Positions 11,172 through 57,720 of a DNA stretch of 64,000 bases are shown here, in pieces. Source of the DNA: Penicillus capitatus (taxonomy: Eukaryota; Plantae; Chlorophyta). A program made the position numbers and the translations under genes. Every line of letters begins with the position of its first letter. Position 1 is the first letter of the stretch. The notes under the pieces were generated by a model. The model was not told the DNA's origin. It worked only from the letters and a program-made list of their open reading frames with translations, and ran no database searches. The stretch covers positions 682,001 through 746,000 of the forward strand of contig OZ287706.1 in NCBI GenBank assembly GCA_965649825.1. Reading direction: 5' to 3'.

Positions 11172-13041
<1,870 letters not shown>

Positions 13042-20474: not shown

Positions 20475-20610
20475 GTGCTTTGCGCTACACGACCACCGAG
20501 ACTGACACAGACGATGCCTCTTTTTCCGATCGACTTCACTAAAAAGTCATATCGCCAAACAAAAGTTAAAAAGTATCCATGTCGCATTACATCTTCGCCT
20601 GCCTCGTGCA
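20475..20610 (-). pseudogene. Remnant of a third LysRS 5' end, head-to-head with RimP
   Basis: acgacc..atgcctcttt..atcgacttcact..aacaaaag..aa..gtat aligns with 12969-13060. Confidence 0.6.
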
Positions 20611-20735
20611 ACGAACCCGTCTGATTCGTCGAAGCTGATGCAAGGGCACTTGAGAGTAGTTTGTTGGAGTCGTCATCGAAAACAATCACGACCGACCCAT
20701 CCGCCGAAAACAATCTGTCGTCTGTACGACAGACG

Positions 20736-30170: not shown

Positions 30171-31219
30171 ATGTGTCTAGGCAGATAGGTGCGCATTCCT
30201 TCCATGCATCATGTTTCTTTCTTACTTTCACTGTGGACAGCGGTTTTTGTGTAATATAATGGTTGCTCCTTTTCATGGCCTTGATCAGCACATCCGAAAC
30301 TGAGGAGATACCATGAACTGCAAAGACCCTTGATCATTTTCTGTTTCTATGTACAAATGTTGGGTTCTCTTGTTTCAATGTAAACTCGAGCGATTTCTTC
30401 GACAACATTCAATGGAGTGACATGGATGATCGAGCAGAAAATGATGATACAAGGAACAGGAATAGAGATTTTGCATGTAGTGTTGGTATTGGACAACACG
30501 ATTTCGTCAATGACACAAGCAGCAAGCTTTCTGAGCTCGGTATTGTCGATGAGCTCCGGCTGTTTGACGGAGAACTGCTGTTAGAGTGAATCATGAGATT
30601 GTGGAGAATAGCGTGCGGAACTTCAATGGTCATCTCCCAGGAACAGTTAATGGTCTTAAGATGATAGCACTCTTTTTGCAAATGATGAGGATTCTACCTC
30701 TATTGGCGCTTGATTTGTTTTCCTGATCCACTCAGTGAACCATTGTTATAGGAGAAATTAACGGAAGTAAGTATTCAGCTTGTTCTCGATGTAGGAAACG
30801 ACGAACGCTGATATAGCCGTCGTAGCAGACTGATTGCATGTTTTCTGTTTGATATGACATGAGCGGACGAAAACAACAGGATCATCTTCTACTGATTTCT
30901 CATTCATTCGGCTAGTTTGGTGGATTGAGTATTTGCGATTAGATTAATGAAATCCGTTGAGTAAACAAGACCAATTTAATTCAAGGAATAGTGGGTATCG
31001 TAGAGTTGGATCACACTGGGGTCAGATCAATTGGCCCTTGACACAAATTGACGAAACATTCCTCGAGAATACGCAAGTCACATCACAGAATTCGATCGCG
31101 AGACACAGACACTGTCGATCGAGTTCTTATTGACAATTCCCTGGCGGAAATTAAAAGGACAACAAGTATTTAATAAAACAGTTACTTGGTCAGTGTTTTG
31201 GTCTGAATCGATGCTTTAT

Positions 31220-34200
31220 TGCACATAACTTAAATAGTGTACGGTCTAGTCGACGTTCGCTGGCCATTAAGAAGAAAAGGAGTGCTTGTCTTGGTGTCAC
31301 GGATCGTGTAGATTTATGATCGACAGCGATGTCGCTTCCGAACTTCATCGCGATACTCTTTGTCGACAAGTGTCGCATATTCTCGATAACAAGCGACACG
31401 ACAAATGTAATCTTCAGCACCAAAACACAGACTGATCCTTCTTTAAATCTCGGATCGATCAATCGGTGCTAATCGAGATCAAATCGAGAGGCGTCGTTAT
31501 CAAAAGCGAATCGATCGATCGATCGCTGTCACGTGAGTTTTGAATCGATTGTCCAATGCCACCCGAAATCAAGAAGGCCGATCGGTGTCAATCGCAATCG
31601 AATCTCGATAAAAAGCTGGTCAGTTAGGCGTAGGAAGCAAAGATCAATAGAAACGTCTTCTGGTTTTTGCCAATGGTCTGTAATATGAGTCTGACGTCGT
31701 AGATGTCCGACAGAACATTTTTCGTGTCGCCCGATTCTGTCTAAACAAATGCACATTTTGATGTCCGTCAGTCATCCCTAATGCGATCCGGAAAGAGGGG
31801 ACAACCACGTGTTCCCCTTTGCCGTTGTGCAAGCCAAGAACTTACCCTTCTAGATACTGCTGTTAGCTGTTGAAGATACCCCGGTGACTTTTAAAACAAG
31901 TCGCATATGCACAGCACCGGGTCGTCAACCGCTGAATGTCAAATGACTGGCTGTCATTTTTACTAAACGCAACGGATATGGCGGCCGATTTAAGTGTCAA
32001 CGAACGTGATTATCAACAGAGACAACTAACGTTAAAAACTCGCAAGATTGATGCGGTTCCACGCAATTGGTCGACCAATCGCGGCATCGATACAGCGACC
32101 ATCGAGGAAATCGAACGGGTCGATTCCTGATCGTCGTCTATCGCGCTCCGAAGATAGTACCAGGACGCCGGCCTCCGAGATGTCGATTGTGAAAAGATTA
32201 GAGATCAAACGGCAGTCAGATAGTCGTGATCAAGGCACGCGTATTAATGCGAGATCGCCATCGGACCCGATTAGTCGCGTGCTTGTGCAGAAGATCGAGC
32301 TCGATCTCTCCGCCGAACGGCAGTCAAAGCTGTTCTGCGCGTCCGACTGTGTAGCGTGCTGGTCCATGTTATCATATGTTGGAAGAGTGGCTGAAAAATG
32401 TAGTCTTAGGCAGCAAGGAGGCGTCGTGGTGGGACCATCACAGCGTCAGCTCGCCACCGTTACCAGACTTCTGTGTTACTGCAGCCATTCGTGAGTGTTT
32501 GCGCTGTTTCTGGATCGTAGTCCACGCATTGATCCTCCGGACACCAGAAGGAGCGTTCCTTTCATCCGCTTCCGAAGCATCATTTGAGTAGATCATGCTC
32601 TCCTGGTCTGCTTCTGTCAATTCAGCCCCATTCGCTTTTCGTAATGGCTGGCAGAGGAAGTTTTGTTCCGTCTTTCTCGACGACAAGAACGCGAGTAACC
32701 CGAAAGCCTCAACGTCCCGTCGAAGGAACTGAGACTGAGTATGGTTTTTCGACGTCCACTGCCGTTTGGCTAGCATCGCCATAGCAAACTGCTCTTTCGA
32801 TCATTGCAACGACATCTTGAACTGATGCGGCGTATCTCTCGGCAATAACTTATCTCCTCGCCATCATGTGCGAAGAGGCCGACTGGCGTAAACCGAGACA
32901 CGCCTCTCCACAAAACCCTCACGCCAGCTATCGGACGCTTTGAAGTGTCACTCGTGTTTCTGGGCAAGAGCGTCCAGCACAATCCCGAATATCCTAATAG
33001 ATGAAGACCAAGAAGCGTTATCGATTGCACAATGTCACGTCGAAGACTGCGTCTCGAGAGCTGGCGAGGATAGACTTCACTCTCCTGCTTACGAGTCGCA
33101 GTCAAATTCGATCTCGAGCGCGTTCCAGCGACGCCTGTTGGGTGCACAGTCTTCGAATCGCGGGACGATCCGACTGGTATCGCTTGGACGCATCGGAGAA
33201 AGGACAACGCTCAGCGTCGTCGAGATTTTTCACTCTACAGGCTGCGGAATGACATTTTCGATCCTGCGCTGGGCTGTTCGCCGTTTAAGAGTAGATCATC
33301 GAGTTCGAGCAGAGTCTGGAGAGTTCGACAGGTAACTCTTCTGCTGTCGTCAGTGCTGAGTGTACGAGATTTAGGAACGTTTCTCACTGTCAAGTACTTA
33401 CGGATAGGGCTGCTGTCAGCCACGGAAGCCGCGCGGATACCAAAAGCTTCTGAAAGAGGCAGGGCTTGTGATGTGTGACACGATGTACTCGAAAGCAAGC
33501 GGAGAATGCTTACCTCAATAGCTTCGTCAATCGAGTTGCCCCGCATTGCACGTCGGCGACGATTCGACTGTCGGCGATCCTGCCCTTTATTGCACGTAAT
33601 CGAGGAGCAATAATGGCCAGAAGGGTTATGACGGCTGCACAAGTCGAGTACGACAATCCCGCCACCCTGGCGCATGCAGACAGTTATGGCAAGCATCTCG
33701 GTTCTCGAGAATCCCACACCAAACGAAGAATCCGTCAGACGCGTTCTGAAAGCGAACTGTCGCGCGGGGATCAAACAAGTCATACTCGATGAGGAAGTCG
33801 AAAGTTTAGATCGTCAACCTCTCGGTGACCAAGAGGTTAACGAGACGTCGGCTCTCGACAGCACCAAAGGGCTCTTAACGAGATTGAGCTGACCGAGGTG
33901 CTCGCTGTCTTTGCTGCGTGGACGATCGAAATCCCACAAACAAAAAGGGAGCTTCACTCGGGCGTCTCCAGAAAACGAATCGGGACAGGATTCGCGTCAG
34001 TCGGCGTCCATCGATCGCGTGCGATTGGATCGGGACTCCTCGATCGTGCAATCGTCCTACAAGTATCGACCGGTCCTCGGTTGAATGCGCTTCAGCAACT
34101 TCGAATCGTCGACTTTAAACGAAGCCGCCGGAGGCGAGCAGTTCCGCCACAGGCCACAAAGCGTAAGGCTCTTTCCGGCCTTCCGCGTCAATGCACCTGC

Positions 34201-35740
34201 CAGCCGCGCCTCCGTTCCAAGGCGACGATTGGTTCGCGTGACGCGACGTCGACCGAATCTGCGTCCGCGACGTCGCACGCACCATCGTTACCGTACGCGA
34301 AGATGCGAAAGGCGACGAAGATGGCGTCGCCGAGACATCACGCGCCGAGCGTGACGAGCACGAGGGCCGGGCAGATTGCCGGAGACGCGCACGGCCGTCC
34401 GAGCGAGGAGGACCTCCTTCTTCTGCACTCTCTCAGACTGATCGGCTGCGCCGACGCACTGCAGCTTTGGCCGGAGATGGCCGCTGCGAAGGTCGATCTG
34501 GAGCAGAGCATGTTCGCGGCGCCGAACAAGAGCGCGACGGAGGCGCTGCTGTACTTCCTTCTGGCGACGCTGACGGACAGGGAGACGGCGCGGAAGAGGT
34601 TCAAGAACGCGTGGCCCGCTGCGACGCAGACCGAGGCGCGCGAGTTCAGACTGAGGGCGGTGGAGTGGATCAGGGAATGTGCGGAGGACTGGGGGGTCTC
34701 TGCCGACTCTGTCTCCCTGCTGCCGGCGCTGCTTCAGAGGAACGCCGGACAGAAACTGGTGCGGATGCTCTGCGAACTGTGCCACGCCGCCATGAGAGCG
34801 GAGCTGGCAGCCGATCAATCGAACGCGGCCGAAGACGACGCATCGACCGCCGATGAGGCGGAGGCGGAGGCGGAGGAAGCCACTCTTGGGGACGGCCTGG
34901 CGCCCGCGGCTGTCGCGATCGGCCAGGCTAGGATCCGCAGCCTTCAGAGGCATTTCCTTCAGCTGGCGACGAATGGGAGCCACTTCGCGAAGGAGATGCG
35001 ATCGGCCGCCGCCGAGATCATGTCCCGTTACTCGGAGCTGCAGGAAAGGGAGGATTCCATGAAATGCGAACTCCCCGAGATCAGAGAATGCCCTCCGGAG
35101 ACAGAGGACACCAAAGAGGTCGACGACACCTCTACCGGGAGGCTCCTCCTCTCTACCGTCGACGACGTCGAAGTAAGGCTCATCCTCCGATGTTTTGCAG
35201 TCGACAAATCTATGTGTCTCGCAGGAGATGGCCCGTCTAGCAGCGCAGATGACACTGGGAGACCGCCACCCATGCGCCATCTCCGGTGAGGAGTTGCTGA
35301 CCCTGATGACACACTGTTATGGCGAAGAGTACGTCCGAAACAGCTTCGATATCAGTGGACCGAGGACCACCGGCTCCCAATCCGTCTCTTCCTCCGCCAC
35401 CCAAGGCAAAACAGAGGTCGACCTGCTCTCGATGTCGTACAGCTGGGGTCGCTGCGCTATCAAGGATCTGCTCATCGCCCTCGAGCCTTTGAGGCACCCG
35501 CCTCGCCAACTGTTCGCAAGAGAACTTATCGACAACACTGCCTCGTTAGCAGATCTCATCAGTCAGACCCGAGATCTCCAGAATCAGAACGTCGAGCGCC
35601 TCGATGCGATGAAAACTCGATTGGAGCAAGATCTGGATCAGCTGGATATCTCTCTTGACCTCGAGGAAGAGCTCACATCCAAACTCATGGCAAACACAGC
35701 ATCACAGCTGCCATCTCTTTTGTCCATCCTCAAAGGCGAA
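31220..35740. repeat. Left arm of inverted duplication IR-B (about 4.5 kb)
   Basis: Reverse-complement match to 53122-57720 at about 90-98% by eye. Homology stops inside the HAUS6 CDS at caaaggcgaa (35740 / 53122). Confidence 0.95.
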
Positions 35741-35773
35741 GCATATGATGAGCAGGAATGCACTTCGGAATAA
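34303..35773 (+). CDS. HAUS6: Augmin subunit HAUS6/AUG6, copy 1; one intron 35173-35224
   Basis: HAUS6_N-like LLHSLRLIG, MFAAPNKSATEALLYFLL, RFKNAWPAATQTEAREFR..VEWI, NAGQKLVRMLCEL. Ends LKGEAYDEQECTSE*. Confidence 0.85.
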
Positions 35774-35863
35774 AGGCGCAGTGTTGATTGTGTCTTCCAT
35801 AGTCGATGTCCCTACCCATTTAAAATGTGAAAACGCGTTTGATCAATTCCTTTCGGTGCCACT

Positions 35864-37706
35864 ATGTCGACGAGCGTGTTAGACGACCTTGGCAAAGAGG
35901 TCACAGGAATCCTTGCACCGGTTTCGCTCTGCATGGCGTTGACCGTCGCAGTCGTAAAACTGATCGACTCTTCTGACGAGGACACTAGAAACTCCGTTAT
36001 CATCGCCACTGCCTATTATGATGAAGAAGCACGTCACCCTGTTCACTTTCTTCCCTTATTCCTTTCTGCCTTCCACAGGACGAAGACTCTGCAGGGACAA
36101 AGCTCTCGGGGTCCATCATCAACGCCCTCATCTTCGTTGCTTTCATCACCATCATTACCTTCGTCCTTTTCTTCCTCTTTAAACACGGAGTACATAGACA
36201 CGCTTTTGTGGCTCTGATTGAGAAGCAGAGGTTCTGTTTAGTGTGTGAGCTGCATCTATGTCTACATGGGATTCTCGCTGCTTCTTATTTTCTTCTTTAT
36301 GGCGGGCGCCGTCGTCGTCAAACTCCTGCAGCGATTCGATCTGAATTTCGATGCCATCTCTCTCTGTCTACTGCTCTTCAATTTTTCAGTCTCCCTCTCG
36401 TTCCGTGGTCCACCCACAGCTTGGATTGTTGGCAGGTTGTGGGAGCATTGGGTCTGTTCTTCTGGACAATCCCCATGCTCGTCAAGCAAGGATATCTTGT
36501 GGCTGTCGGCGTCATCGTCGCACACATCTTCACATGGATACCGGAATGGTCCACTTGGGTTGTACGTACCATACCAAACCCGATCCCCTCTGTCATTTGA
36601 TCACACTTTTTTCTGTAGTTACTGGTCTTCATGTCCTTCTACGACATCTGTGCGGTTCTCATCCCTGGCGGTCCACTAAAGGTAAACCAGATAGATACTC
36701 TGTGCTTTCGTCATTGTCTCCTTGCAGGCCTTGGTGGAATTAGCTATAGAACGTGGTGAAGAAATCCCGGCCTTAGTGTACGAAGTCCGTCCTACTGTAC
36801 GACCAGAATCTTGCAGAGGACCATGGCTTGATAACGCGATTGTGCGTAGCGAGGTGGAGGAGGTGGTTGGGATGAGCGGTATACTCGACAGAGAGGACGA
36901 TCGCGCGACATGGTCTCTCAGTTTCCAAGCGCATCTCTGACAGCCGTTGTCACTATGGTCAACAGCGAAGATGTCGGAGCTGATGTCTAGCAGCAAAGTG
37001 CCCGAACACTCCTCCTGATCATCGTCTTTGTCTATTAGGATGGACAAGAGCGATCCGACTCCAACAACGAAAGTAACATCGTCAATGAACAGACGGCTTT
37101 AATAACAGTAAACGACCAAGGTCTGCGTATCAAGAGGGAGAAACGAGTCACCCATTTGGGTTCTGCGGTGTAGCGAGCAGCAGCAATGCACCACAAGAAG
37201 TAGTGGACCCCGCGGAAGAAGAACGCCCCAGACGATCTCGGCGACACAGACACAGACGTTCCAGCGAAAGAACAAGGTGTGCGTCTTTTTGCCGATGGCG
37301 ACAGCGCATTTGCCGATGAAGTTTTAGAGTGGCGGCACCTGAACGCAGCCGATCTGCCGAGTCCGCCGAATCGATTGACTTCAGTCTACCAGATTCGCTG
37401 AAACTAGGTCTCGGAGATTTCATCTTCTACAGCCTCCTCGTCGGCCGTGCTGCCCTTTACGATTTCATGACAGGTGTGATCATACATTCTTACAACCGTT
37501 CTCACTCTTTTGATCGCACAGTGTTTGCCGCGTATGTTGGTATCGTTGCCGGTATGGGCATCACACTGTTGTTACTCGCTCTTTATCAAAAAGCTCTACC
37601 GGCGCTTCCTTTTTCCATCGTGTTGGGACTCATCTTCTATTTCTTGACGCGATTAGTTTTGGAGCCCTTTCTGATTTCGCTAGCCACCTCCTTAACATTC
37701 TTCTGA
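35864..37706 (+). CDS. PSEN: Presenilin (gamma-secretase catalytic subunit)
   Basis: PVSLCMALTV, IPEWSTW, catalytic FYDICAVL..GGPLK, LKLGLGDFIFYSLLVGRAA and KALPALPFSI. Confidence 0.96.
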
Positions 37707-37792
37707 TGATGGTTTGCTCTATAAATGCACAAATGCATGCATGACGCAACGAAATCTTCATCGACTCGACAGCGCAACGCGTCGTGCTCGAG

Positions 37793-40058
37793 ATGACGAT
37801 CGAAGACATGCAACTCCGTGGCGTTCTCGGCTTTGAGGGAAGCATTACGGACGGCCTCTTGCTTCTGCCTGATGGGCAGACCTTAGCATATGCGCTCGGT
37901 TCAACGATCGTCCTACGCGACAAGACTTCGGTGGCCTCGCAGCGCTTTCTGCATGGACATACCGACAAAGCACAGCATTCGATATTCACTCTCGTCGTGC
38001 ATGTTACTCACTTCTGTAGATCTCTTGTCTCGCGGCGTCGAAATCGGGAACGTATCTCGCTTCTGGTCAAGTGACGCACATGGGATTCCTTGCCGACGTA
38101 ATTCTGTGGCATCTCGAGGAACAGAAACTCGTCCATCGCATGCAGCTGCACAAAGTACATAGGCATTCACAGAGATATCGACGCTTCCGTCCATCTAGGC
38201 ACGTGTGCAAGCGGTCGATCTATCATTCGACGATCGGTATCTCATCTCTCTCGGCGGAGAAGACGACAACTCGCTGGTTCATCGCGTCGCGATCATTGAT
38301 CTGCGCGTTCTATTCGTTACAGGTGCTTTGGGATGTGGCGACCGGCAACGCGATCTGCGGCAGCCCGACAGACGGAAACTTAATGCAGACGGTTCGATTT
38401 CTTAATCGCAGCGACGCGACGGTCGTTGTCGCTGGTCACTCCTATCTCAGCATATGGGATTACGATCGTCCCAATAACAAACTTCGCTCCACCGAGATTC
38501 AACTCGGGCAGCTACGACGCGTCTTTGCATCGGTGCACATCGACGCTGACGATGCCTATGTCTACGCAGCGACAACATCTGGCGACATTTTCCAGGTGTG
38601 TCTCAGTCTAGGCCACGCTGAACAGTCTCCGATAGGCCGATCTGCAAAAACGCGTATTGATAACATCGGGTCCATCGAAGAAACTCATTCCGGGAGGCGC
38701 AACGTCCGTCTTCGCCACGAACGATGGTCGAATCTTTGTCGGATGCGGTGACGGAAGTGTGAAGCTCTTGATCGTCACACGTCGCGTCACGAGGAGCAAA
38801 AGAGGAATCCAATCGCTCCGAGAACTGTCATCGGTCGATCTTTACAGCGGCATCTCGTCAACAGGCGCCGCCGTGTCGTCCATTCTCTTTGAAAGCGAAG
38901 ACGCATCGACGATCACTCTTCTCGTCGGCACACAACATAGCGACATCTATCGAATCGTACTCAACAAAGCGGACGACAGGTGAGCGATGATCCGAATTCG
39001 ACGATTGCGATCGAAGTCTGTCATGTCGACACGATCAATTCTAGATTCTCTCATGCGCTACTTCAGACATCGCACAACAGTCCAGTCAATGACGTCGCTT
39101 TTCCTAAGGCCGCCGCCGCCATCTTTGCGACATGCGGAATCGGCGACATCCGTCTGTGGCATCTACCGACGTGTCGAGAGCTCCTGCGCATCGTCGTGTC
39201 GAATGTCGAGTGCCACTGTCTGGCCTTTGCCAACGACGGCAGCAATATTTTCAGCGGATGGAGTGATGGCACGTCCCCCTTTCGATAACCGAACGCTATC
39301 ACACACACGATGTCTTCTAGGAGCGATCCGCGTATTTCGTCCTCAAAGCGGCAGACTCGTCTTCAAGCGACCCGACGCACATCATCGGGCGATCCGTTCA
39401 TTGGCGAGCACACATGATGGCCATTGTCTCGTCACGGGCAGCGAAGACGGCACCGTTCGCGTGTGGAGATTACTCGAGGATCGTTGCGATCTCGTTGCCT
39501 CGATGAAGGAGCACAAATCCGCCGTGACATCTATTCGGATCAACCACGCTATGTCTGACGAATTTGCCAGCTGCAGCGAGGACGGCTGCTGTGTCGTCTG
39601 GGATTTTAACACTTTCCATCGTCGCAACAGCTTTGGAGCTTCTACCTGTTTCAAGGCCATCGAATACCATCCGGAAGGCAGCCAGATCGTATCGACAGGC
39701 ACCGATCGAAAAGTCGATCGCCCATCGTCGACCGATCGAGAAAAAACGATGTCGTGTTGTGCAGATCGCCTATTGGGATCCGTTCGATGGCCAAGCCATT
39801 CGCATGATCGACGGATCACCGAACGCTCCGCTTCACGCCTTAGCCGTCGACGATTCAGGCGACAACATTGTCAGCGGTGGACGCGATGCGACGATTCGAC
39901 TGTGGCATTACGACGAAGGAACGTGCTACGCCGAAGGCCGAGGACACAGTGGATGCATTAACAGCATTGCGATCTGTCGGGACAGGACAGCCATCGTTTC
40001 CGTCGGAACAGAAGGAGGCATCTTCATCTGGAATTTCCCACCGGCAACAGACAACTGA
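37793..40058 (+). CDS. CFAP52: Cilia- and flagella-associated WD-repeat protein CFAP52/WDR16
   Basis: LRGVLGFEG, YLASGQVTHMGFLADVILW, LISLGGEDDNS, AICGSP, FSGWSDG.IRVFRPQSG, and multiple WD repeats. Confidence 0.92.
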
Positions 40059-40095
40059 TGAAACGGCCCTCTTCCACTTGCATGCCGATCGACGG

Positions 40096-40344
40096 TTATG
40101 TTTTGCTGTGTGGCTGTTTTTCCGGTGGTCTCGGAACGAAAGGACGTCGAAATTCCTCAGGTTCGCATTTTTCGGCGAGTTTGAGAATGTCGATGTTTCG
40201 AAGGGCGTGCATTTTATTTTTCCGTCGATTCCTCCTTTGCGTTTTCGTGATTATCGGTATTCCCCATGGTTTATTCCAAAGACGTCCGCCTGTCACCTTC
40301 TTCACGGTAAAACGCGCCAGTGCGACAGGGCTGACCCAGATCAT
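40096..40344 (-). CDS. Small basic protein, probable mitochondrial ribosomal protein mL60 (MrpL31)-like
   Basis: MIWVSPVALARFTVKKVTGGRLWNKPWGIPIITKTQRRNRRKN..RNIDIL resembles the GG.LW..PW..S..QK..R...LR.VD pattern of mL60, recalled from memory. Confidence 0.45.
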   Translation of the reverse strand: MIWVSPVALARFTVKKVTGGRLWNKPWGIPIITKTQRRNRRKNKMHALRNIDILKLAEKCEPEEFRRPFVPRPPEKQPHSKT

Positions 40345-40440
40345 CGCGTTCCACAGACAATAGCTATCCACCGAGTGATGTGACCCGTCTGTTATGTCCC
40401 ATCACCGTAGGGTTGTTTTCGCTGCACAGGACGCGTCCCC

Positions 40441-41720
40441 ATGATGCTGCACAGGAGGCTGCTGATACTGGGCAGATGTCCGACGCGCCAAATCTGTCAT
40501 ATCCCACAACTGTCTCTCCAACGCCGTCCGCAAACGCGTCGGGATCAAAATGCCGTTCACTCGAGGTCGGCCATCTGCCGAAACGACGTCCGGCGTCCGA
40601 AGCCGACACCGCGCAAGAACGGTTGTCGATCGGCGGCGACATCCACCTCTTCATCCCGTCATCATGATCACAGACGGGAGAAAGAAGTGGCAGATCTGTT
40701 TGCCTCTCCCCTCGGGGTCGTTCTGAAACTTATGGGAATGGTATGCTTCTCCGTGGCCTGCCTGAATTGCCTGTCGTCCTGCTGTCCACTGGGGAGATTC
40801 GCGAGTGTTGCTGCTCAGAATTCAGGATCCGGTGAGACACGCAGCCTCTGTGTCGGTGCGATCGTGGGTGGATCTTAGGAACTTTGTCCATTCCTGCATG
40901 GACAGGACTCTCTGCCGGTTTCCTGCACACGTTGGCTGGACCGGATCACTTAGCCGGACTAACACCCCTTACCCTGGGACAGTCTCAAGCAGCTGCCGTA
41001 TCGATGGGCGCTCTGTGGGGGTTTGGCCATTCCTCCGGCCAACTGATCCTCGGTATTACGTTCCTCATTCTTAAAGTACTATCCCTTGCAAAGATGCAAG
41101 GAAAGATCCGTCGAGCATTATTCTATAGGAACGCTTTCAAGGCATCGTGCCGATCTTGTCGCGATGGTCCGGTGCCATAGTGGGCTTGACGCTCGTTGCT
41201 ATTGGCTGTATGGGCATTTACGAGAGTCGATTTGCACATCACCACGAGGATACGCACGAATCTGCAACACCAGCCGTCAATCCCAAAGGTCTCCATTTCT
41301 CCCACGCCTGAGCATCATGCATCATGACTGTCTGTGTGCATCTAATAGAGGGCATCGCCAGACGTGGGTTGGGAACGTATGCCATGGGGTTTGTCTACGG
41401 TCTTCAGCCAGATTCCCTCTTTGTCGTTTTGCCGGCTCTGGCATTGCCCTCCGCCCTGGCGACGCTTGCTTATGTCGTGACGTTCGTCGTCGGGACAGTC
41501 TGTGCCATGGCAGGGTACACTTTTGCCATCGGTTCGTCTTGGCCCCCCATCGATGTCTTCGACCATCGTCATGGCTGTAGGGACAGCATCGGATGCGGCA
41601 ACGCAACATCAACCGTGGCTCATGCAACATCTCTCTACCCTTGCTGCATCCGTTGCCCTTGGCATTGGATTGCTCATTCTTCTCCCCAACCTCGGATGTC
41701 CATTACCTTTCTCGCTGTAG
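40441..41720 (+). CDS. Nickel/cobalt transporter-like membrane protein (HupE/UreJ/NiCoT-related), probably plastid-targeted
   Basis: AGFLHTLAGPDHLAGLTPL, GALWGFGHSSGQ, His-rich FAHHHEDTHE, and GFVYGLQPDSLFVVLPAL. Start and end are approximate. Confidence 0.85.
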
Positions 41721-41971
41721 CAATTGGAGAGCATCTCGTAAACAGGACACGAACCGTCGATCGTCATAGCCGTCCACTTGACAGATTCCAGACCCCGAAT
41801 TGGACCCCCTACCTCGGCCCACTTCTCACATGGCGGCGCATCTGAGAGGAGACAAGTGTTATTGAGAGTGCATCATCGTTAGAGGACGGACGTCATTTAA
41901 CGCGCCATCCCGGAATCCATTTGTTCGTCATCCGGTCGCGCCACTGTATCCGTCTCTCTCCGTTCGCGTCG

Positions 41972-47254: not shown

Positions 47255-47675
47255 GATGCCTTTAGCATGTCAAGAACATATCCTGATGCTGACAGTCATG
47301 AAAACGTCTGTTTGTATGCGCCTTGTAAAAGGATTGAGATGTTATGGGATGTTCGTGCGGTGCCGTTGCGAAGGGATGACGTGGCATTGATGTGACGTTC
47401 GCCGCCCACCCATCTAACCGATGGCTCATGACGCTCTTCTTCGTACCATGTCTCTATCCTCGCCATGACGGCATCGTTCATTTCTACCCTGCACCTGGGG
47501 TGATGGCTACTATGTCAAGGGCGTGCCTGGCAGACAGGATAGCATAGAACCAAATGACCATGGGTTGCAATTGAACATGAGCTTGTTCAAAAACTTTATC
47601 GTCAGAAGTACTGGTCAGCGCTTCGTCGAGTCGTATATAATACATGCTAAGTCATAATGTCCGTCGATACTGTGC

Positions 47676-48295
47676 TCAGTAACGTGAGTATCCGCGTCGT
47701 CCTCTGCGTGTCTTTGCCAGCCACACCACAAGTTTATTCAATGTCCATTTCGGTCCATAAGCACGGCGCATTTCGTTCTTGATTTCTGCAAAAGCGTGGT
47801 CGAGCGTGAGACCTTCTTCTATCTTCAGCTCGACGTATTCGCAGATCCATTTGCGTCGAAACACTTGCATCTTGCATTTCTTGTTCGAACGCGGTCGGTA
47901 CATGTAACCCTGTTCTGCTCGGCGCCGTTCAAGATCGCGTAGGGCCGGGTGCGATTTGCCCTGGACTATCACTTCGACGGTCCATTCGTGCCACAGACGT
48001 TCCAGTGAATACTCTGCGCAAAGATGCGTTGTCAGTTTGCGGCACTTCTTTGCATATTCGCAGTGACTGTACCGCTTAGACGGGGAAGATCATCAAACAA
48101 GCAAGGGGAATTTTGCCCACGAGGCGTCATCATCGTATAATGGACTGATACCCTGACGAGGAAGAGAACGCGTTTGGGGTTGTGCTCCCAGTAAAACGAA
48201 ATAACAGGAAGGTACAGTTGAATGCCACGTAAGAAAGGAAGCTGCGCCAACCGACGTTCATCAATTTCATCATCGCCACCTGCGCTACGACGCAT
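47676..48295 (-). CDS. Stand-alone GCR1_C-domain protein (Crypton/Ndc10-associated DNA-binding domain); 5' exon uncertain
   Basis: SLERLWHEW..HPALRDLE..FRRKWICEYVE..AFAEI..WTLNKL matches the GCR1_C pattern TV.DLW.EW..PSIRELE..RRK.II..I..LNKL, recalled from memory. Confidence 0.7.
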
Positions 48296-48364
48296 GGATT
48301 TGACGGCGAAGCTCACGGAACACGGTCCGTTGTTACGGTGCTGTCGCCGAGATCACGATGCTCA

Positions 48365-49034
48365 ATGACAGGCGAGGCGTTTTTGTCTTTGTTTGATGAC
48401 GCGGATCGAAAAAGAGTGAGTGTGAAGAAGAGAGCGCCGCCAGTGAAGTCGGAGAGTCATGAAACACTTCACCCGGTGGACAAAACGCACGGCGAGGCAG
48501 CCAAGAGATCATCTAGGCAGTGCCAACCCATCCCACAGAAAGAGAGACCTACTTTGATGAATGCCAAAGTCACCAATGTTGTCCCTCCTCAGCACAGACA
48601 TGGATAGAATGCCGTGGATGGTAGGCGTCGGAGATGCATGGGCGTAAGAGGTGCCGGATGCACGAGAGGAAAAGTCATGAAGAGATGGCCGATCGCCGCA
48701 ATCGTGAAGAGTTTCTTGCGTTTCGGCGAGATGTGGAGAAGTTAGGTACAGAAGATCGATATCTCGACAGAGCGGATGCAGAGAGATTCTGCCTTCAGGT
48801 ATTAAGGGATTGGACAAGGAGACATCGACGGCGTTCATCGATGACAAGTGGAGAGCATTGGGTGGAAAGAAGCCACCTGGCAAACCCATCCCCAAGAACA
48901 TCGGCATCGAACTCTGGAAACAAAAACAACAAGATCGATGCCTCTCTGAGCACCAGCCGAAACGGAAAAAGACGTCCTTGAAGAACAAACGAACAGGCCA
49001 TAAAATATCCCGTCGATACAAAGGGCATCCCTAA
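48365..49034 (+). CDS. Small basic protein, Faf1/C1orf131-like (40S pre-rRNA processing)
   Basis: FRRDVEKLG|IKGLDK..ALGGKKPPGKPIPKNIG, with a Lys-rich tail. Confidence 0.45.
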
Positions 49035-49196
49035 TGTGCTAAAGTATGAGATGAGAGCTGGTTTGTATGTACTGTTATTTCGTGTAACTCTCGTCTTGCT
49101 CTTCCATCTCGTACGTATCCGTTTCAGCCGCAGCCACTTTTCGTTCGAGCTCTGTCAACAGCTCTTCTCGACTCTTGCTCCCATAACTATCGCCGC

Positions 49197-51754
49197 TCAT
49201 CTTTTTCTACATATCAAATAGATCAGATACAGAGTGAGAAGTGTGAGAAAGTGGCAGACGAGTGCATCTCGAATGAGCTGTTTTTTCTGTTCGGAGATCG
49301 GCGCCGTTAATCGTGCCACCACTTCGGACGCACGGGCCAGTTCTTCTTCCTCTTCTGCCTGACTGGCCGTCTCCTGTGCCACTTTCAGCTGTTGCCGCAG
49401 AATATCGTATCTACAACAGGAGCATATGTACAGAGAATGAGGATTGGACTGATGTGACTTGTTCATGATGTCCTGTCGGCGGTTGGTGAACTGCGACGGG
49501 AAGACTTCGGGAAAGTAACGCTGAAGAAAGCCGAACACGAAGACGTGACCCACAGGCGTGAGCGGAACGACCAGTATTGCGGCGAAAGGAATAAAGGCCA
49601 AGATATCTCTGGCTGTCCGTCTCAGTGCTGCCACTTCTCTTGGTTTTAGCGTCCCACCTGGATCACACATGATGATCATAAAGATCACTTGGCAAAAGGG
49701 CAAACCGAGTGCCGCTTTGGAGAAGAGACGACTGGCGTAGATCATATCGGTGCCCATGAGCCGTACCCCACGGATCAAAAAATTGATGCCCTCTTGGATC
49801 GTCTCGAGTGCCTCTTCCACTTGGAGATTCACTTTGGTCCATGTGAGGCGCGAATCGCCAAACACCACATCGGGATTGATGCCCAACCGACTTCTCAAAT
49901 CCTCGACATCGTCGACAAGATTCTGCAGAATGGTATCCCGGACGAGCACTGTTGGAGATTGCGTGAGTCGTTTCATCAGCGTCTTCAGCTGATCATCCAG
50001 TAGAGCGAACTCTGCTGTCAGAAGCAGAAGCTCTTCTGTCGATCCCTGTCGTCGAATGAAAGCACCGAGTGAAGATCGATCTTCGACAACATCGAGTGCC
50101 TCCTCTTCCAACGTCTGATAGACATACTCCATTTGCAGTTGCAGCGATCTCAAGGCCAGCAACCGCGATAACTGCAGCACTTCATCGTCCATGATCTTTA
50201 GCTGAAATGCTAGAGAGAGACGATCTTTGGCACTGGATTTCTGTAGCTTTGCCTCCCGTGCTTTGCTTGCTTCTTTGACACGCTTCTCGAGCTTCTCCAC
50301 TTCGAGCACCAGCTGAGTCATGTTTGTCTTTGAAGCTTCGGCCGTCGATAGGGGACGGGGAAGACCGGATGGTAAACGGGCGTTCTGTTTTGAACTGCCT
50401 CCTCCGTTTAGTCGATCCCACAGATCTTTTAAATAAACGGCTGTTTCCTGCAATCCGGATAGATAGTCTTCAGGCGGTATCTTCTTAACCTAAGCCGTCA
50501 CATCATTCTCACTCTTCTGAATCATCTCACACAAAAGCACCTGCTGCAGTTTGGATGCGACAAACTTCTCCGCCATCTTCTCCGCCTTGCCCAATCGCTT
50601 GATGGCCCCTCCAGCCCTCGATTCATTCGGTCGACCATACTTGTACTGTTTCTGAATTTCCAGTAGACTCGAGAGCTTCTCCTTGTCGAACACCGTCATC
50701 TTCCTGCGCAGATCCAGTCAACCTCATGTCATGCACACGACACCACTAAGATCGGCGGCCTCACGATGCGATTGGCAGACTCGGGACTTCCGACATCACG
50801 CGATCTAACAACAACTGAGCATATCGATTGACCTTATTCTCAATCTGCGTCTTCACATTCTCGGCCACTTCTTTGGAGAAGAGTGACGAGAAATCGGGTG
50901 ACATGAGTCGCCATCCTGCCTAGACAGCCATTCCTCACACTTCATCGACCATTCTCCCATTTCGCATACTTTCAACTGATCGGATGTCACTTGCATCTCA
51001 GCAATTGTCTCGAGCGTCCTATTCAACACCTGCTTCTCAATTTCTTCGCGTTCTTCTCCGGAGTACAGAGAAAGATTGCACTGGTCTTTGATCTCGTCAT
51101 AGATCGGTGTCTCCAGTCGCAACAGATACTCGGCACGCAGACAATTACGATAGATCTTCCGCAGCTGCAAGAGATCTTCCAGACGCTGCACACGATATCC
51201 AGACGCGTCATCATCAAACGACATCTCTTGCGGGAACAAATCGAGCTGCGAATTCGGTCTGCCATCCATCCTCCGTGAGACAAGACATGCCAAGATCAGA
51301 CGGATCCTTACTCCTGGACGGCGCAGACCACAAGTCTTCTGTGGGACAGTGTTCGCTTCTTGTGGCTTTCTGAGCTGTGTCGGTTTGTTCGGCGTCGGTG
51401 AGGTTTGCTGTTGGGTTGGTGACTGGGACGACGACTAAAGGTCAGCAACGACGACTCACTGTATGGCCCTGGGACACCACTTCGTTTCCAGCACCGTATC
51501 TCTTGACGCATCATCGTTTGTGGACGACGCCTAGGGCGACGAATCTCCTTTCTAAGTCAAGGCTGACGCCCTCTCTGTCCAGAAGAGCGCAGATGACACA
51601 CACGTACGTCGAGTGCCACGTCGTCTCTGTACGACCTCTGCTGTTGCCTCTCATCACATGCGATTCGGTCTTGGACCTTCCGTCGTTCCACCGACACGAC
51701 GCATTCGACGGGACCCGCACCGGATGGGACGATTTGGTGAGACACAGGACGCAT
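49197..51754 (-). CDS. LETM1-like protein (plant/algal organellar type); start approximate
   Basis: GVRLMGTD..ASRLF..G|TLKPREVAALRRTARDILAFIPFAAILVVPLTPVGHVFVFGFLQRYFP..FPSQF, plus coiled-coil regions. Confidence 0.82.
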
Positions 51755-53103
51755 GAGGAATGGGAGAAAGGAATGCGGAATAGGTTTATGGGATTTTTGG
51801 ATCAACACGGAGCCAATGGCGAATCGTCTACGTGGTGGAGCACGTGGAAGCTTTGTCGACAGACTCCTGAACCCCGTGGCAACACTTTCTGCGTTGGGTA
51901 TCTTCAACTGAGAGGAGAAGTGTGAGAAATGTGTATAGAGCGCCGGTGCAGACGCCGATTGAGTATTTTCGTACGCGACGCATCACGGGAGATGGACGTT
52001 GTCTTTTCCGGGCGATCGTAATCTTCGTCTCACGGAAGACAGCAGGTTACATACGGCTGTTGTTTAGGCTCAAGGGATAGCACGATATAAGAGTATTCAT
52101 TTGACGCCGACCAAGGAAGAACGTGAAGCAGGTGTGATGGAGGGGAGCACGTGTGAGATGATGTGACGTGGTCATTGTGCTGAAGATAATTTGAGAATGG
52201 CTGTGCAAGAAGCCTTGTGTACATCTAAGGACATGCAGCATGAGTTCAGAGATGTTATCCAGACTCTAGAATCGCCGCTGCCCAAGTCAGTAGCACAGAT
52301 AAGTAAAATATGTGTGCGCGGTGTGGTGTGGTTAATAGATACTGCAAACAGTTGCGCTCGCCGAAGTTTTGGGGAGGGGAGCCAGAACTCCTCGTCCTTT
52401 CAAAACTGCTGAAAACACCGATCCATGTCTACAAGAGAGAATCGGAGTTTGGCAGGCAAGAGTAGATGTGAAAGGTTCTGATGTGACAGGTGCTTGTGTG
52501 GTGGCGCAGTCAAGGATCGGGATTTGTAAAGATTGTGGAATATGGAAGGGAAGCAAAGAAGATACGATATCCCCCAGTGAAACTGCTGTATTCAGGATCG
52601 AATCATTATGATCTGCTCCTGGATTGATCTCATGCATCAGGGAATGGCTTTAAGCAAGACTGAATGGTTGACGAGAAAAGGGTCGTCCCGCGCTAAGACT
52701 TGTTTTTTCTTTAACGAGATTAGAGATGTCAAGAAGAGTAGTGGATTCTCTCATTGAGCGCGTATTCGTTGGATTGTTGTATTGGGAATGCTGTCACAAC
52801 AAGGAGAGAGATTAGAGGGTCGCCAATTTGTCAGGCAGTTAGTTAACTTAAACAGTCCCCAATAATGTACTGGAAATAGATCGAACTTGCACTGGCAAAA
52901 AATCAAAAGGACACACTGTTTTGCTGTGCGGAGAAGGGGAGAAGATGTTTTAATATGCATACCCTTGACTGACGTACCAAAGTAACAGATACTTTGAAAA
53001 CAAGCCAAAAGCTACACGTACAAACAAGCAAACAAGAAGAGGCAGACGTCTAGAGGTAAGGGACAAGACTATAATACATGCACCACTTTCTCATGATGCT
53101 TTT

Positions 53104-54568
53104 TCATTTTCCCTCTTGTGTTTCGCCTTTGAGGATGGACAAAAGAGATGGCAGCTGTGATGCTGTGTTTGCCATGAGTTTGGATGTGAGCTCTTCCTCG
53201 AGGTCAAGAGAGATATCCAACTGATCCAGATCTTGCTCCAATCGAGTTTTCATCGCATCGAGGCGCTCGACGTTCTGATTCTGGAGATCTCGGGTCTGAC
53301 TGATAAGATCTGCTAACGAGGCAGTGTTGTCGATAAGTTCCCGGACAAATGCTCGGCGAGGGGTGTCTGTCAGTGGCTCGAAAGCATCGACCAACTTCTT
53401 CACTCCGGAGGTTGCCCAGCTGTACGACATCGAGAGTAGGTCGACTTCTGTTTTGCCTTGAGTGACGGGTGAGGAAACGGATTCAGAATCAAGTGCGCCG
53501 GTGGGCCTCGGTCCACTGATATCGAAGCTGTTTCGGACGTACTCTTCGCCATAACAGTGTGTCATCAGGGTCAGCAACTCCTCACCGGAGATGGCGCATG
53601 GGTGGCGGTCTCCCAGTGTCATCTGCGATGCTAGACGGGCCATCTCCTGCGAGACACATAGACCTGTCGACTGCAAAACATCGGAGGATGAGCCTTACTT
53701 CGACGTCGTCGACGGTAGAGAGGATGAGCCTCCCGGTAGAGGCGACGTCGACCTCTTTGGTGTCCTCTGTCTCCGGAGGGCACTCTCTGATCTCGGGGAG
53801 TTCGCATTTCATGGAGTCCTCCCTTTCCTGCAGCTCCGAGTAACGGGACATGATCTCGGCGGCGGCCGATCGCATCTCCTTCGCGAAGTGGCTCCCGTTC
53901 GTCGCCAGCTGAAGGAAATGCCTCTGAAGGCTGCGGATCCTCGCCTGGCCGATCGCGACAGCCGCGGACGCCAGGCCGTCCCCAGGGGTCGCTTCCTCAG
54001 CCTCCGCCTCAGCCTCATCGACGGTCGATGCGTCGTCTTCGGCCGCGTTCGATTGATCGGCTGCCAGCTCCGCTCTCATGGCGGCGTGGCACAGTTCGCA
54101 GAGCATCCGCACCAGTTTCTGTCCGGCGTTCCTCTGAAGCAGCGCCGGCAGCAGGGAGACAGAGTCGGCAGAGACGCCCCAGTCCTCCGCACATTCCCTG
54201 ATCCACTCCACCGCTCTCAGTCTGAACTCGCGCGCCTCGGTCTGCGTCGCAGCGGGCCACGCATTCTTGAATCTCTTCCGCGCCGTCTCCCTGTCCGTCA
54301 GCGTCGCCAGAAGGAAGTACAGCAGCGCCTCCGTCGCGCTCTTGTTCGGCGCCGCGAACATGCTCTGCTCCAGATCGACCTTCGCAGCGGCCATCTCCGG
54401 CCAAAGCTGCAGTGCGTCGGCGCAGCCGATCAGTCTGAGAGAGTGCAGCAGCAGGAGGTCCTCCTCGCTCGGACGGCCGTGCGCGTCTCCGGCAATCTGT
54501 CCGGCCCTCGTGCTCGTCACGCTCGGCGCGTGATGTCTCGGCGACGCCATCTTCGTCGCCTTTCGCAT
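53104..54568 (-). CDS. HAUS6: Augmin subunit HAUS6/AUG6, copy 2
   Basis: Near-identical to copy 1 apart from a divergent internal patch and the C-terminus LKGETQEGK*. Confidence 0.85.
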
Positions 54569-57500
54569 CTTCGCGTACGGTAACGACGGTGCGTGCGACG
54601 TCGCGGACGCAGATCCGGTCGACGTCGCGTCACGCGAACCAATCGTCGCCTTGGAACGGAGGCGCGGCTGGCAGGTGCATTGATGCGGAAGGCCGGAAAG
54701 AGCCTTACGCTCTGCGGACTGTGGCGGACTGCTCGCCTCCGGCGGCTTCGTTTAAAGTCGACGATTCAAAGTTGCCGAAGTGCGTTCAACCGAGGACCGA
54801 TCGATACTTGTAGGACGATTGCACGATCGAGGAGTCCCGATCCAATCGCACGCGATCGATCGAAGTCCGGCGGATCGAATCGCCCCTCGGCAATCGAACA
54901 GATCGGAATCGGAATCGTCGCAGTCGATGGACGCCGACTGACGCGAATCCCCTCCTGATTCGTTTTCCGTCGACGCCCGAGTGAAGCTCCCTTTTTGTTT
55001 GTGGGATTTCGATCGTCCACGCAGCAAAGACAGCGAGCACCTCGGTCAGCTCAATCTCGTTAAGAGCCCTTTGGTGCTGTCGAGAGCCGACGTCTCGTCA
55101 ACCTCTTGGTCACCGAGAGGTTGACGATCTAAACTTTCGACTTCCTCATCGAGGATGACTTGTTTGATCCCCGCGCGACAGTTCGCCTTCAGAACGCGTC
55201 TGACGGGTTCTTCGTTTGGTGTGGGATTCTCGAGAACCGAGATGCTTGCCATAACTGTCTGCATGCGCCAGGGTGGCGGGATTGTCGTACTCGACTTGTG
55301 CAGCCGTCATAACCCTTCTGGCCATTATTGCTCCTCGATTACGTGCAATAAAGGGCAGGATCGCCGACAGTCGAATCGTCGCCGACGTGCAATGCGGGGC
55401 AACTCGATTGACGAAGCTATTGAGGTAAGCATTCTCCGCTTGCTTTCGAGTACATCGTGTCACACATCACAAGCCCTGCCTCTTTCAGAAGCTTTTGGTA
55501 TCCGCGCGGCTTCCGTGGCTGACAGCAGCCCTATCCGTAAGTACTTGACAGTGAGAAACGTTCCTAAATCTCGTATACTTGGCACTGACGACAGCAGAAG
55601 AGTTACCTGTCGAACTCTCCAGACTCTGCTCGAACTCGCTGATCTACTCTTAAATGACGAACAACCCAGCGCAGGATCGAAAATGTCATTCCGCAGCTTG
55701 CAGAGTGAAAAATCTCGACGACGCTGAGCGTTGTCCTTTCTCCGATGCGTCCAAGCGATACCAGTCGGGTCGTCCCGATTCGAAGACTGTGCACCCAACA
55801 GGCGTCGCTGGAACGCGTTCGGGATCGAATTTGACTGCGACTTGTAGGCAGGAGAGTGAAGTCTATCCTCGCCAGCTCTCGAGACGCAGTCTTCGACGTG
55901 ACATTGTGCAATCGATAACGCTTCTTGGTCTTCATCTATTGGGATATTCGGGAATGTGCTGGACGCTCTTGCCCAGAAACACGAGTGACACTTCAAAGCG
56001 TCCGATAGCTGGCGTGAGGGTTTTGTGGAGAGGCGTGTCTCGGTTTACGCCAGTCGGCCTCTACGCACATGATGGCGAGGAGATAAGTTGTTGCCGAGAG
56101 ATGCGCCGCATCAGTTCAAGATGTCGTTGCAATGATCGAAAGAGCAGTTTGCTATGGCGATGCTAGCCAAACGGCAGTGGACTTCGAAAACCCATACTCA
56201 GTCTCAGTTCCTTCGACGGGGGACGTTGAGGCTTTCGGGTAACTCGCGTTCTTGTCGTCGAGAAAGACGGAACAAGACTTCCTCTGCCAGTCATTACGAA
56301 ACGCGAATGGGGCTGAATTGACAGAAGCAGACCAGGAGAGCATGATCTACTCAGATGATGCTTCGGAAGCGGATGAAAGGAACGCTCCTTGTAGTATCCG
56401 GAGGATCAATGCGTGGACTACGATATAGAAACCGCGCAAACACTCACGAATGGCTGCAGTAACACAGAAGTCTGGTAACGGTGGCGAGCTGACGCTGTGA
56501 TGGTCCCACCACGACGCCTCCTTGCTGCCTAAGACTACATTTTTCAGCCACTCTTCCGACATATGACAACATGGACAGCACGCTACACAGTCGGACGCGC
56601 AGAACAGCTTTGACTGCCGTTCGGCGGAGAGATCGAGCTCGATCTTCTGCACAAGCACGCGACTAATCGGGTCCGACGGCGATCTCGCATTAATACGCGT
56701 GCCTTGATCACGACTATCTGACTGCCGTTTGATCTCTAATCTTTTCACAATCGACATCTCGGAGGCCGGCGTCCTGGTACTATCTTCGGAGCGCGATAGA
56801 CGACGATCAGGAATCGACCCGTTCGATTTCCTCGATGGTCGCTGTATCGATGCCGCGATTGATCGACCAATCGAGTGGAACCCGCTTCAATCTTGCGAGT
56901 TTTTAACGTTAGTTGTCTCTGTTGATAATCACGTTCGTTGACACTTAAATCGGCCGCCATATCCGTTGCGTTTAGTAAAAATGACAGCCAGTCAGTTGAC
57001 ACTCAGCGGCTGACGACCCAGTGCTGTGCATATGTGACTTGTTTCAAAAGTCGGCACGGTCTCTTTGACAGCTAAGAGAAGCTTCTCGAAGGGTAAGTTC
57101 TTGTCATGCACAGCAGCAAAGGGGAATACTAACGTGTTGTTCCGTTCTAGGACGCGCTAGCGATGAATGATGCACATCAAGATGTGCTTTTGTTTAGGCT
57201 GCGTCGGCCAACACGAAAAATGTTCTGTTGGACATCTACGACGTCAGACTCATATTACAGACCATTGGCAAAAACCAGAAGACGTTTCTATTGATCTTTG
57301 CTTCCTATGCCTAACTGACCAGCTTTTTATCGAGATTCGAATGCGATTGACACCGATCGGCCTTCTTGATTTCGGGCGGCATTGGACAATCGGTTCGAAA
57401 ATCACGTGACAGTGATCGATCGATTTGATCCGCTTTTGATAACGACGCCTCTCGGTTTGATCTCGATTTGCACCGATTGATCGATCCGAGATTCGGAGAA

Positions 57501-57720
57501 GGATCAGTCTATGTTTTGGTGCTGAAGATTACATTTGTCGTGTTGCTCGTTATCGAGAATATGCGACACTTGTCGACAAAGAGTATCGCAATGAAGCTCG
57601 GAAGCGACATCGCTGTCGATCATAAATCTACACGATCCGTGACACCAAGACAAGCACTCTTTTTCTTCTTAATGGCCGGCGAACGGCGACCTAGAGCAAA
57701 ACACTATCCAAGTTATGTCT
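53122..57720. repeat. Right arm of inverted duplication IR-B
   Basis: Reverse-complement match to 31220-35740. Confidence 0.95.

Follow-up and report, generated by a model that had tools for sequence, protein, structure and literature searches.

Partial concerted evolution, in which paralogs are homogenised over part of their length while one segment with a function of its own remains divergent and clusters by paralog across species, is known from the opsin, globin and RH gene pairs, most of which are tandem direct repeats. The locus described here, an inverted repeat designated IR-B, lies in a 64,000-nt stretch of DNA from the green alga Penicillus capitatus (GenBank assembly GCA_965649825.1, contig OZ287706.1, positions 682,001 to 746,000 of the forward strand; hereafter the window) and carries two genes predicted to encode augmin subunit 6 (HAUS6, or AUG6). 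It differs from the opsin, globin and RH pairs in that the copies are inverted, and crossovers between them invert instead of deleting or duplicating. With the large inverted repeat of plastids it shares conversion-homogenised copies and a single-copy region found in both orientations; however, IR-B is nuclear, as shown by its spliceosomal introns, its nuclear-type genes and the length of its contig (about 1 Mb), and its arms are far less identical. IR-B is very probably an old inverted segmental duplication whose arms have been kept alike by arm-to-arm gene conversion and which has been flipped by crossovers.

Palindromes of the primate X and Y chromosomes resemble IR-B in their inverted gene-bearing arms, unique spacer, concerted arms, conservation across species and a spacer that occurs in either orientation. 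On the primate X, about 50% of the spacers are inverted between species, through non-allelic homologous recombination within one chromatid (PMC8327919). The Y palindrome P6 exhibits multi-kb conversion tracts and rare inversions (PMC3723533), and the GC enrichment of primate palindromes is consistent with biased conversion (PMC8981503). By the operational thresholds used for primates (arms >8 kb, identity >99%), IR-B would not be counted as a palindrome, although it behaves as one, with arms of 4.5 kb at 95.4% identity (97.2% outside the hot spots of divergence). Moreover, its spacer holds four or more essential-type genes, its arm boundary falls inside a coding sequence (CDS), leaving shared 5' and distinct 3' parts, and its host is a green alga in which a sex-chromosome link was not seen.

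A further parallel is found in Caenorhabditis, where gene pairs together with their intergenic DNA form near-perfect inverted repeats; across species their structure is better conserved than their sequence, which was taken as a sign of active maintenance (Zhao et al., 2007; PMC1803023). The likeness consists in homologous convergent or divergent pairs arranged as inverted repeats. Whole genes and the full intergenic sequence are repeated there, a gene-bearing spacer being short or absent, and the abstract describes neither a flipped 17-kb spacer nor a trans-specific unconverted coding island (PMC1803023). For siphonous-type green algae, a literature search found no description of nuclear palindromes.

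Architecture of IR-B and its HAUS6 genes

The arms were delimited with a repeat finder and a blastn self-comparison of the window as 31223-35743 (arm A) and 57718-53119 (arm B). The blastn segment pairs are 31223-34014 against 57718-54924 (95.2% identity) and 34010-35743 against 54860-53119 (94.8%), and global alignment yields 4492 aligned columns with 208 mismatches, or 95.4% identity, and 110 gap columns. The arms of about 4.5 kb around a 17.4-kb spacer reported in the first-pass annotation, which a model had made from the letters of the window, are thereby confirmed, as is its statement that homology stops inside the CDS: beyond 35743, the inner arm end, it ceases abruptly, some 6-10 codons ahead of the stops. 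Each arm consists of ~3 kb of upstream sequence that does not code, followed by almost the whole of a HAUS6/AUG6 gene with two exons. The divergence between the arms is strongly non-uniform, ranging from 0 to 30 mismatches per 100-nt bin (chi2 = 387, 43 degrees of freedom, p = 7e-57); it is thus patchy, whereas even divergence was what the first-pass annotation had held to speak against conversion. Three hot spots were located, at 31745-31945, at a 68-nt indel (34009/54861-54928) and at 35374-35565, and without them the arms are 97.2% identical. At the outer side, arm identity fades gradually across 31075-31245 with no sharp end, and the interval 30001-32000, at the outer boundary of arm A, has the lowest GC content of the window (0.43).

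Judged by its domain and predicted fold, the gene pair in the arms is HAUS6/AUG6. Both copies match Pfam HAUS6_N at E = 1e-21 (1.3e-21, above the cut-off). The HAUS6 family profile retrieved AUGMIN subunit 6 from the PDB at 6.7e-108 and the Xenopus and human HAUS6 at 1e-22 to 1e-30, and the best structural matches of the AlphaFold model in Foldseek were the HAUS6 chains 8at3_F, 8fck_F and 9rpd_J. The nearest named homologue belongs to Bryopsis sp. KO-2023. The two open reading frames (ORFs) had been described as intact, which holds only once a 52-nt intron (GTAAGG...CGCAG) is excised, giving proteins of 472 aa (A) and 470 aa (B). The corresponding intron of a related species has 54 nt, with conserved ends and a divergent interior; a 28-nt intron was considered as the cause of the frame break and rejected, as the related species lacks that acceptor but keeps the CGCAG site. 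The patch sequences and the C-terminal endings (EAYDEQECTSE and ETQEGK) quoted in the first-pass annotation are correct, and near-identity does resume after the patch (98.9% over 35566-35743). The word alleles has to be replaced, since two genes in cis on one contig are paralogs.

For comparison, the window sequence was placed at positions 699,105-763,104 of a 954,164-bp contig of ENA assembly ERZ25074695, with 41x coverage, and set beside the independently assembled ERZ26696514, which contains the related species (hereafter the relative; ~85% nucleotide identity to the window, ~15% diverged) as two contigs that are 99% identical, one of 914,622 bp. These are metagenome-style long-read assemblies, and structure and orientation were read from the contigs. 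Among 5.8 billion proteins, the only close relatives of the HAUS6 pair were two proteins on the 914,622-bp contig; two further HAUS6 proteins lie on the second ERZ26696514 contig, which is a second haplotype or strain of the relative. Two word-based protein searches returned only the window's own HAUS6 and one relative, and outgroups were reached by a full HMMER scan. Known relatives in the JGI metagenome and prokaryote genome collections are on contigs of 1-3 kb, too short to display the architecture. The relative's HAUS6 genes are likewise convergent, ~17.4 kb apart, with the same spacer genes between arms that are 93-95% identical; the copy with the A-type island and tail adjoins presenilin and the B-type copy stands on the LETM1 side. 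At the locus its two contigs are 98.9-99.1% identical and collinear over 40 kb. The window's own sample provided one more contig (ERZ25074695 ctg217477, here L005; 7,065 bp, 7x), which is 98.7% identical to the stretch of the window from LETM1 to arm B and points to another haplotype or strain, whose assembly could not be carried past the arm.

The features of IR-B, in window coordinates, are as follows:
31223..35743, plus strand: arm A, non-coding upstream DNA and HAUS6-A to 10 codons before its stop; 95.4% identical to the reverse complement of arm B
53119..57718, minus strand: arm B, mirror of arm A
35744..53118, no strand: spacer of 17,375 nt, aligned as inverted, with the inner arms, relative to the flanks when compared with the relative
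31223..34302 (mirror 54569-57718), no strand: outer arm, apparently non-coding; homogenised within each genome, 50-77% identity between species with large indels
31745..31945 (mirror 56993-57193), no strand: outer divergent patch, 77% identity between the window arms; the relative's arms are 98% identical there
54861..54928, minus strand: 68-nt segment present in arm B only; its position matches a 29-nt tandem array in the relative
34303..35172, plus strand: HAUS6-A exon 1, 290 codons, HAUS6_N domain
35173..35224, plus strand: HAUS6-A intron, 52 nt, GTAAGG...CGCAG; its removal restores the frame
35225..35773, plus strand: HAUS6-A exon 2, with the tail ...GEAYDEQECTSE and a TAA stop
53699..54568, minus strand: HAUS6-B exon 1, from the Pfam match and gene model
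53647..53698, minus strand: HAUS6-B intron, 52 nt, from the gene model
53104..53646, minus strand: HAUS6-B exon 2, with the tail ...GETQEGK, then the stop
35374..35565, plus strand: divergence island, A version, codons ...SQSVSSSATQGK...SWGRCAIKDLLIALEPLRHPPRQLFAR; 76.6% identity to B, groups with the relative's A
53297..53497, minus strand: divergence island, B version, ALDSESVSSPVTQGK...SWATSGVKKLVDAFEPLTDTPRRAFVR; like single-copy outgroups
35566..35743, plus strand: post-island segment; window arms 98.9% identical, the relative's arms 83%

The outer 3 kb of the arms returned no Pfam match, no frame-specific conservation against the relative and no Rfam match, and neither tandem nor terminal (transposon-like) repeats were found there; on these null scans a gene, an RNA or a transposon in this part was rejected. 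Among the relative's four arms, a 2.25-kb insert that includes the 29-nt tandem array (~13 copies, 9324-9709) is confined to the left one of haplotype 1 (L001 7422-9672).

Concerted evolution and the island that escaped it

When the four arms (window A, window B, relative left, relative right) were aligned as a quartet and informative sites were counted, 740 sites over 31220-35390 grouped the arms by species and a single one by paralog; in the exon part of this interval the count was 161 against 1. The opposite was found in the island, where 17 sites over 35391-35541 grouped by paralog and 3 by species. Maximum-likelihood trees gave the same division, with support of 100/100 for the species groups in the N-terminal part and of 100/99 for the paralog groups in the island; the C-terminal tails, like the ~160-nt patch, group by paralog across species. 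The arms are therefore, on the evidence of the alignments, evolving in concert within each species, at silent and non-coding sites included. Selection on the protein is not the cause of this similarity, because homogenisation extends to the non-coding DNA of the arms and to the intron.

Synonymous (dS) and nonsynonymous (dN) divergence by the Nei-Gojobori method follows the same pattern. In the N-terminal part, dS is 0.05-0.09 between paralogs (dN/dS 0.14-0.24) and 0.34-0.38 between species (dN/dS about 0.3). In the island, A and B differ with a dS of 1.0-1.8 and a dN of 0.23-0.26 (dN/dS 0.13-0.23), compared with a dS of 0.6-0.7 (dN/dS 0.15-0.27) between orthologues. Since the island groups by paralog and its A-B dS exceeds the orthologous dS, the HAUS6 duplication is, as read from these sites, clearly older than the split between the window species and the relative. 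The dN/dS of the divergent patch, to which the first-pass annotation had drawn attention, thus lies at 0.13-0.27 in all comparisons; positive selection on the island was rejected, and by this measure both versions are under purifying selection.

Past the island, the window copies A and B join the relative's A copy in the tree (100/99), with 90% identity to it and 82% to the B copy. As both post-island copies of the window are A-like and those of the relative are not, A-to-B conversion must be placed in the window lineage, and the sequences indicate that this lineage overwrote B with A beyond the island while the island itself was spared.

More recent exchange can be followed in L005, whose HAUS6 is the B copy by island and linkage. 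Up to ~35370 its arm is a mosaic of A-like (28) and B-like (26) sites, arranged in 16 runs where 28 are expected (runs test, p = 0.0005) and spanning ~50-400 nt each; from 35377 on, 76 of 76 sites are B-like. Short conversion tracts that halt abruptly at the island would leave such a pattern. A tract of 80 nt in the relative, over the end of exon 1 and the intron (cf. window 35130-35224), is derived in three of the four copies, and in the A copy of haplotype 2 (L004) the tract matches the window at 13 of 18 polarisable sites; to judge from these sites, it looks like a variant part-way through its spread among the copies. The arm-to-arm conversion proposed in the first-pass annotation is accordingly borne out by the second species, its two haplotype-like contigs and L005.

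The polarity of the island types was read from an outgroup HAUS6 on the Logan contig SRR33785046_745590 (24,494 bp, GC 43%, ~40% HAUS6 identity). The genes follow one another as gene Y, LETM1, presenilin, CFAP52, RAD50 and a single convergent HAUS6, and on this contig a second HAUS6 is absent upstream of presenilin and of gene Y. The outgroup island is B-like, as in two other distant fragments, with a three-residue insert, a GV..KLV motif and a short tail. From these sequences the type B island looks ancestral and type A derived, and the duplication probably arose after the outgroup lineage had branched off. The gene order differs from that of the window, which implies further rearrangements. 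On the same contig, the LETM1 and gene-Y block is situated upstream of presenilin in the orientation opposite to that of the window, the single HAUS6 abuts the 3' end of RAD50, and the two ends of the contig form an inverted repeat of 231 nt with 77% identity.

In the AlphaFold model, the island forms a disordered linker and two short helices with a predicted local distance difference test score (pLDDT) of ~50-60, and a long C-terminal helix (pLDDT ~80-87) follows directly after it. The region corresponds to a part of augmin which we take to be the helical stalk common to other subunits. It is plausible that the two HAUS6 isoforms could differ in partner binding via the island. The GC content at third codon positions (GC3) of the homogenised HAUS6 CDS (34303-35370, 53500-54568) is 0.79 in both species; the neighbouring genes reach 0.52-0.60 and the single-copy HAUS6 of the outgroup 0.44.

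Spacer inversion and competing explanations

Window positions 34203-54668 align in reverse to relative 30404-9903, while the flanks (25489-31037 and 57564-64000) align forward; on this alignment the spacer, together with the inner arms, has opposite orientations in the window species and the relative, a difference that the first-pass annotation had not foreseen. The island and tails move with the spacer, so that type A adjoins presenilin in both species, and the two contigs of the relative have identical spacer orientation. The breakpoints would fall at some point of the homogenised arm portion, which is where crossing over between inverted repeats should put them; flank-linked markers by which to place them inside the arms were not found, homogenisation having erased them, and the outer divergent patch is not alignable between species. 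A further possible trace of crossing over is seen between the relative's haplotypes, where the central arm has 26 crosswise sites (left of haplotype 1 equal to right of haplotype 2, and vice versa) against 1 haplotype-wise site, flanked on both sides by paralog-wise sites. Conversion is non-reciprocal and unable to swap segments; most simply, the block would result from a pair of crossovers at different points, the second undoing the flip made by the first.

The sequence of events would then be as follows. HAUS6/AUG6 and its upstream region would have been duplicated in inverted orientation before the species split, with the inner end placed 6-10 codons before the stops. The arms would pair within the chromosome, and non-crossover repair would overwrite one arm with the other in tracts of ~50-400 nt, leading to concerted evolution of the upstream region, exon 1, intron and start of exon 2 in each species. 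Occasional crossovers between the arms would invert everything between the crossover points, which would explain the opposite spacer orientation in the two species. Conversion would halt at ~35370, where a 9-nt indel is met together with a segment with 23% mismatches, and past this point the 160-nt coding island and the last codons would stay paralog-specific under purifying selection. As agent we infer ordinary homologous recombination, acting between the two arms of a single chromatid without a dedicated enzyme, of the kind reported for primate palindromes (PMC8327919, PMC3723533). The island presumably persists because the indel and mismatches block heteroduplex extension, because convertants are selected against, or for both reasons. 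Inversion could be tolerated because the exchanged promoters and 5' halves are near-identical and neither protein is altered. The two predicted HAUS6 proteins would share a microtubule-binding N-terminal half and have distinct short helices and tails by the C-terminal coiled coil.

Several points weigh against this account. The identity of the arms, 95-97%, is far under the >99% of primate palindromes, and conversion in IR-B would have to be slow or short-tract. The raised GC3 of the homogenised CDS fits GC-biased conversion, but the non-coding arm, with a GC of 0.52, equals the background and shows no enrichment, and the high GC3 may reflect codon usage rather than biased conversion. The crosswise block could be due to haplotype-specific homogenisation combined with an assembler phase switch in one arm, which would still mean arm-to-arm exchange, by conversion instead of crossover. 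The inversion between species is known from one assembly each (for the relative, two contigs), arm copy number and orientation were taken from assembled contigs alone, and the outgroup may have lost a copy instead of never having had two.

Two other explanations would remove the need for an old duplication. An inverted duplicate faked during assembly, by a collapsed or chimeric haplotype join or a fold-back read artefact, might be suspected given the metagenome-style long-read assemblies and the separate 7x, 7-kb contig of the same sample that overlaps arm B and the spacer. However, three other contigs, which come from another sample and another species, have the same arrangement of two copies, including the A- and B-specific island and tails; the arms differ at 208 sites and by indels, each is joined to different unique sequence on both sides with the joins conserved, and trans-specific A/B types could not be produced by a haplotype mis-join. 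Independent recent duplications in each lineage would also explain why the arms within a species are alike, given the high arm identity within each genome, and a neighbouring repeat, IR-A, is an example of an inverted duplication newly formed in this region. Yet the arm ends, the spacer gene set and the A/B islands and tails are common to both species, the island is more divergent between A and B than between orthologues and groups by paralog, and a mosaic of variants shared among the copies of one species calls for exchange, which a single duplication event would not supply. Both explanations are ruled out because independent assemblies share the paralog-specific differences, and neither retains any appreciable likelihood.

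Two functional settings, each quite improbable, were weighed as well. IR-B might be a programmed flip-flop switch similar to the mating-type inversion of Ogataea or to site-specific invertible segments, whose orientation would set the expressed HAUS6 isoform or spacer genes, with conversion as a by-product. Recurrent flipping is suggested by the orientation difference between species and the swapped central arm between haplotypes, and the structure has been retained across the species split; against this, the Pfam scans of arm and spacer ORFs revealed neither a recombinase nor a nuclease domain, a flip alters neither the upstream sequence much nor the protein, as the promoter region and 5' CDS are homogenised, the spacer genes are housekeeping genes (presenilin, CFAP52, RAD50, LETM1), and the relative's two haplotypes share one orientation. 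About half of the primate X palindromes also vary in spacer orientation, and no switch function has been proposed for them (PMC8327919). Alternatively, the region could be a mating-type, sex-linked or otherwise recombination-suppressed block, as the first-pass annotation had suggested, in which palindromes allow within-chromosome repair without a homologue, as proposed for Y palindromes. Two inverted repeats and one direct repeat do occur inside 58 kb, and palindromes are enriched in sex-limited regions of animals and willow (PMC3403216, PMC7023750). This suggestion was not upheld: the two haplotype-like contigs representing the relative agree to 99% and stay collinear across 40 kb, without a sign of diverged gametologs, Pfam scans of the window ORFs turned up no sex or mating-type gene families, the spacer genes are of the housekeeping kind, and IR-A is absent from the relative.

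Neighbouring features and significance

The presence of presenilin, CFAP52 and RAD50 in the spacer, as stated in the first-pass annotation, was confirmed, and LETM1 was added. The assigned genes are:
35864..37706, plus strand: presenilin gene with several small exons, from the family scan
37766..40383, plus strand: CFAP52/FAP52-like WD40 gene; best PDB match FAP52, 6.8e-42
42043..47214, plus strand: RAD50 gene, with zinc hook and Walker B pieces
49248..51254, minus strand: LETM1-like gene, from the family scan

Some further spacer genes have no family assignment. A conotoxin-family Pfam match in a 115-aa spacer ORF (E = 0.008, below the cut-off) was dismissed as noise. The genome is compact, the presenilin ATG standing only 90 nt past the HAUS6-A stop. 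The LETM1 ORF is 72% identical to its counterpart in Caulerpa lentillifera, 51% to that in Ostreobium quekettii and 40-50% to those in other green algae. Together with the Bryopsis HAUS6 homologue, and thus on two genes, this places the window among the green algae, probably in the order Bryopsidales.

IR-A (window 10-1864 against 13041-11178), whose left arm may run past the window start, contains two convergent class II (D/K/N) aminoacyl-tRNA synthetase ORFs, at 850-1746 (plus strand) and 11337-12149 (minus strand); identity between its arms is 98% over the outer 685 nt and 75-83% further in. It had been presented as a parallel of IR-B, and in architecture it is one, but not in age. In the relative only a single counterpart was found (20 kb further left examined) and the inverted duplication is absent, so that IR-A as a structure shared with the relative was rejected; from this comparison IR-A is the younger of the two and specific to the window lineage, IR-B having been present before the species diverged. 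A direct repeat (13229-13910 / 20716-21547, 85-97% identity), which overlaps a DUF7912 ORF (20661-21722), bounds a 6.8-kb segment (13910-20693) missing from the relative; either the window lineage gained it, by tandem segmental duplication or by insertion, or the relative lost it through a deletion mediated by the repeats. Of the recurrent mechanism invoked in the first-pass annotation, a region prone to segmental duplication (IR-A, the 6.8-kb segment) can be retained, but the ages of IR-A and IR-B differ.

A possible, rather doubtful extension is that selection keeps IR-B in order to hold two augmin-6 isoforms, with the 54-codon module and the tail protected against convertants. If this were true, conversion would keep the N-terminal partner-binding halves identical, and both proteins would remain compatible with the other augmin subunits, while module and tail would give each isoform a different interaction beside the C-terminal coiled coil. 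Such an arrangement could be useful to a giant siphonous, and thus multinucleate, cell in which microtubule arrays of several kinds coexist. The island would then be a selected boundary and not only a passive homology barrier, the sequence on both of its sides having been converted in the window lineage.

The behaviour of sex-chromosome palindromes and of the Caenorhabditis pairs was known; what IR-B adds most clearly is the full set of products together with a trans-specific unconverted island. From sequence alone, one small locus on four independent contigs displays the full set of inverted-repeat recombination products, namely concerted evolution, short mosaic tracts, conversion jumping a divergent island, reciprocal exchange and spacer inversion. 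Synteny and inversion calls near such repeats require spanning reads, and HAUS6 gene trees from such algae would misdate the duplication unless the island is treated separately. With the arm boundary placed within a gene, the locus constitutes a natural experiment in which conversion and selection partition a protein into homogenised and paralog-specific parts.

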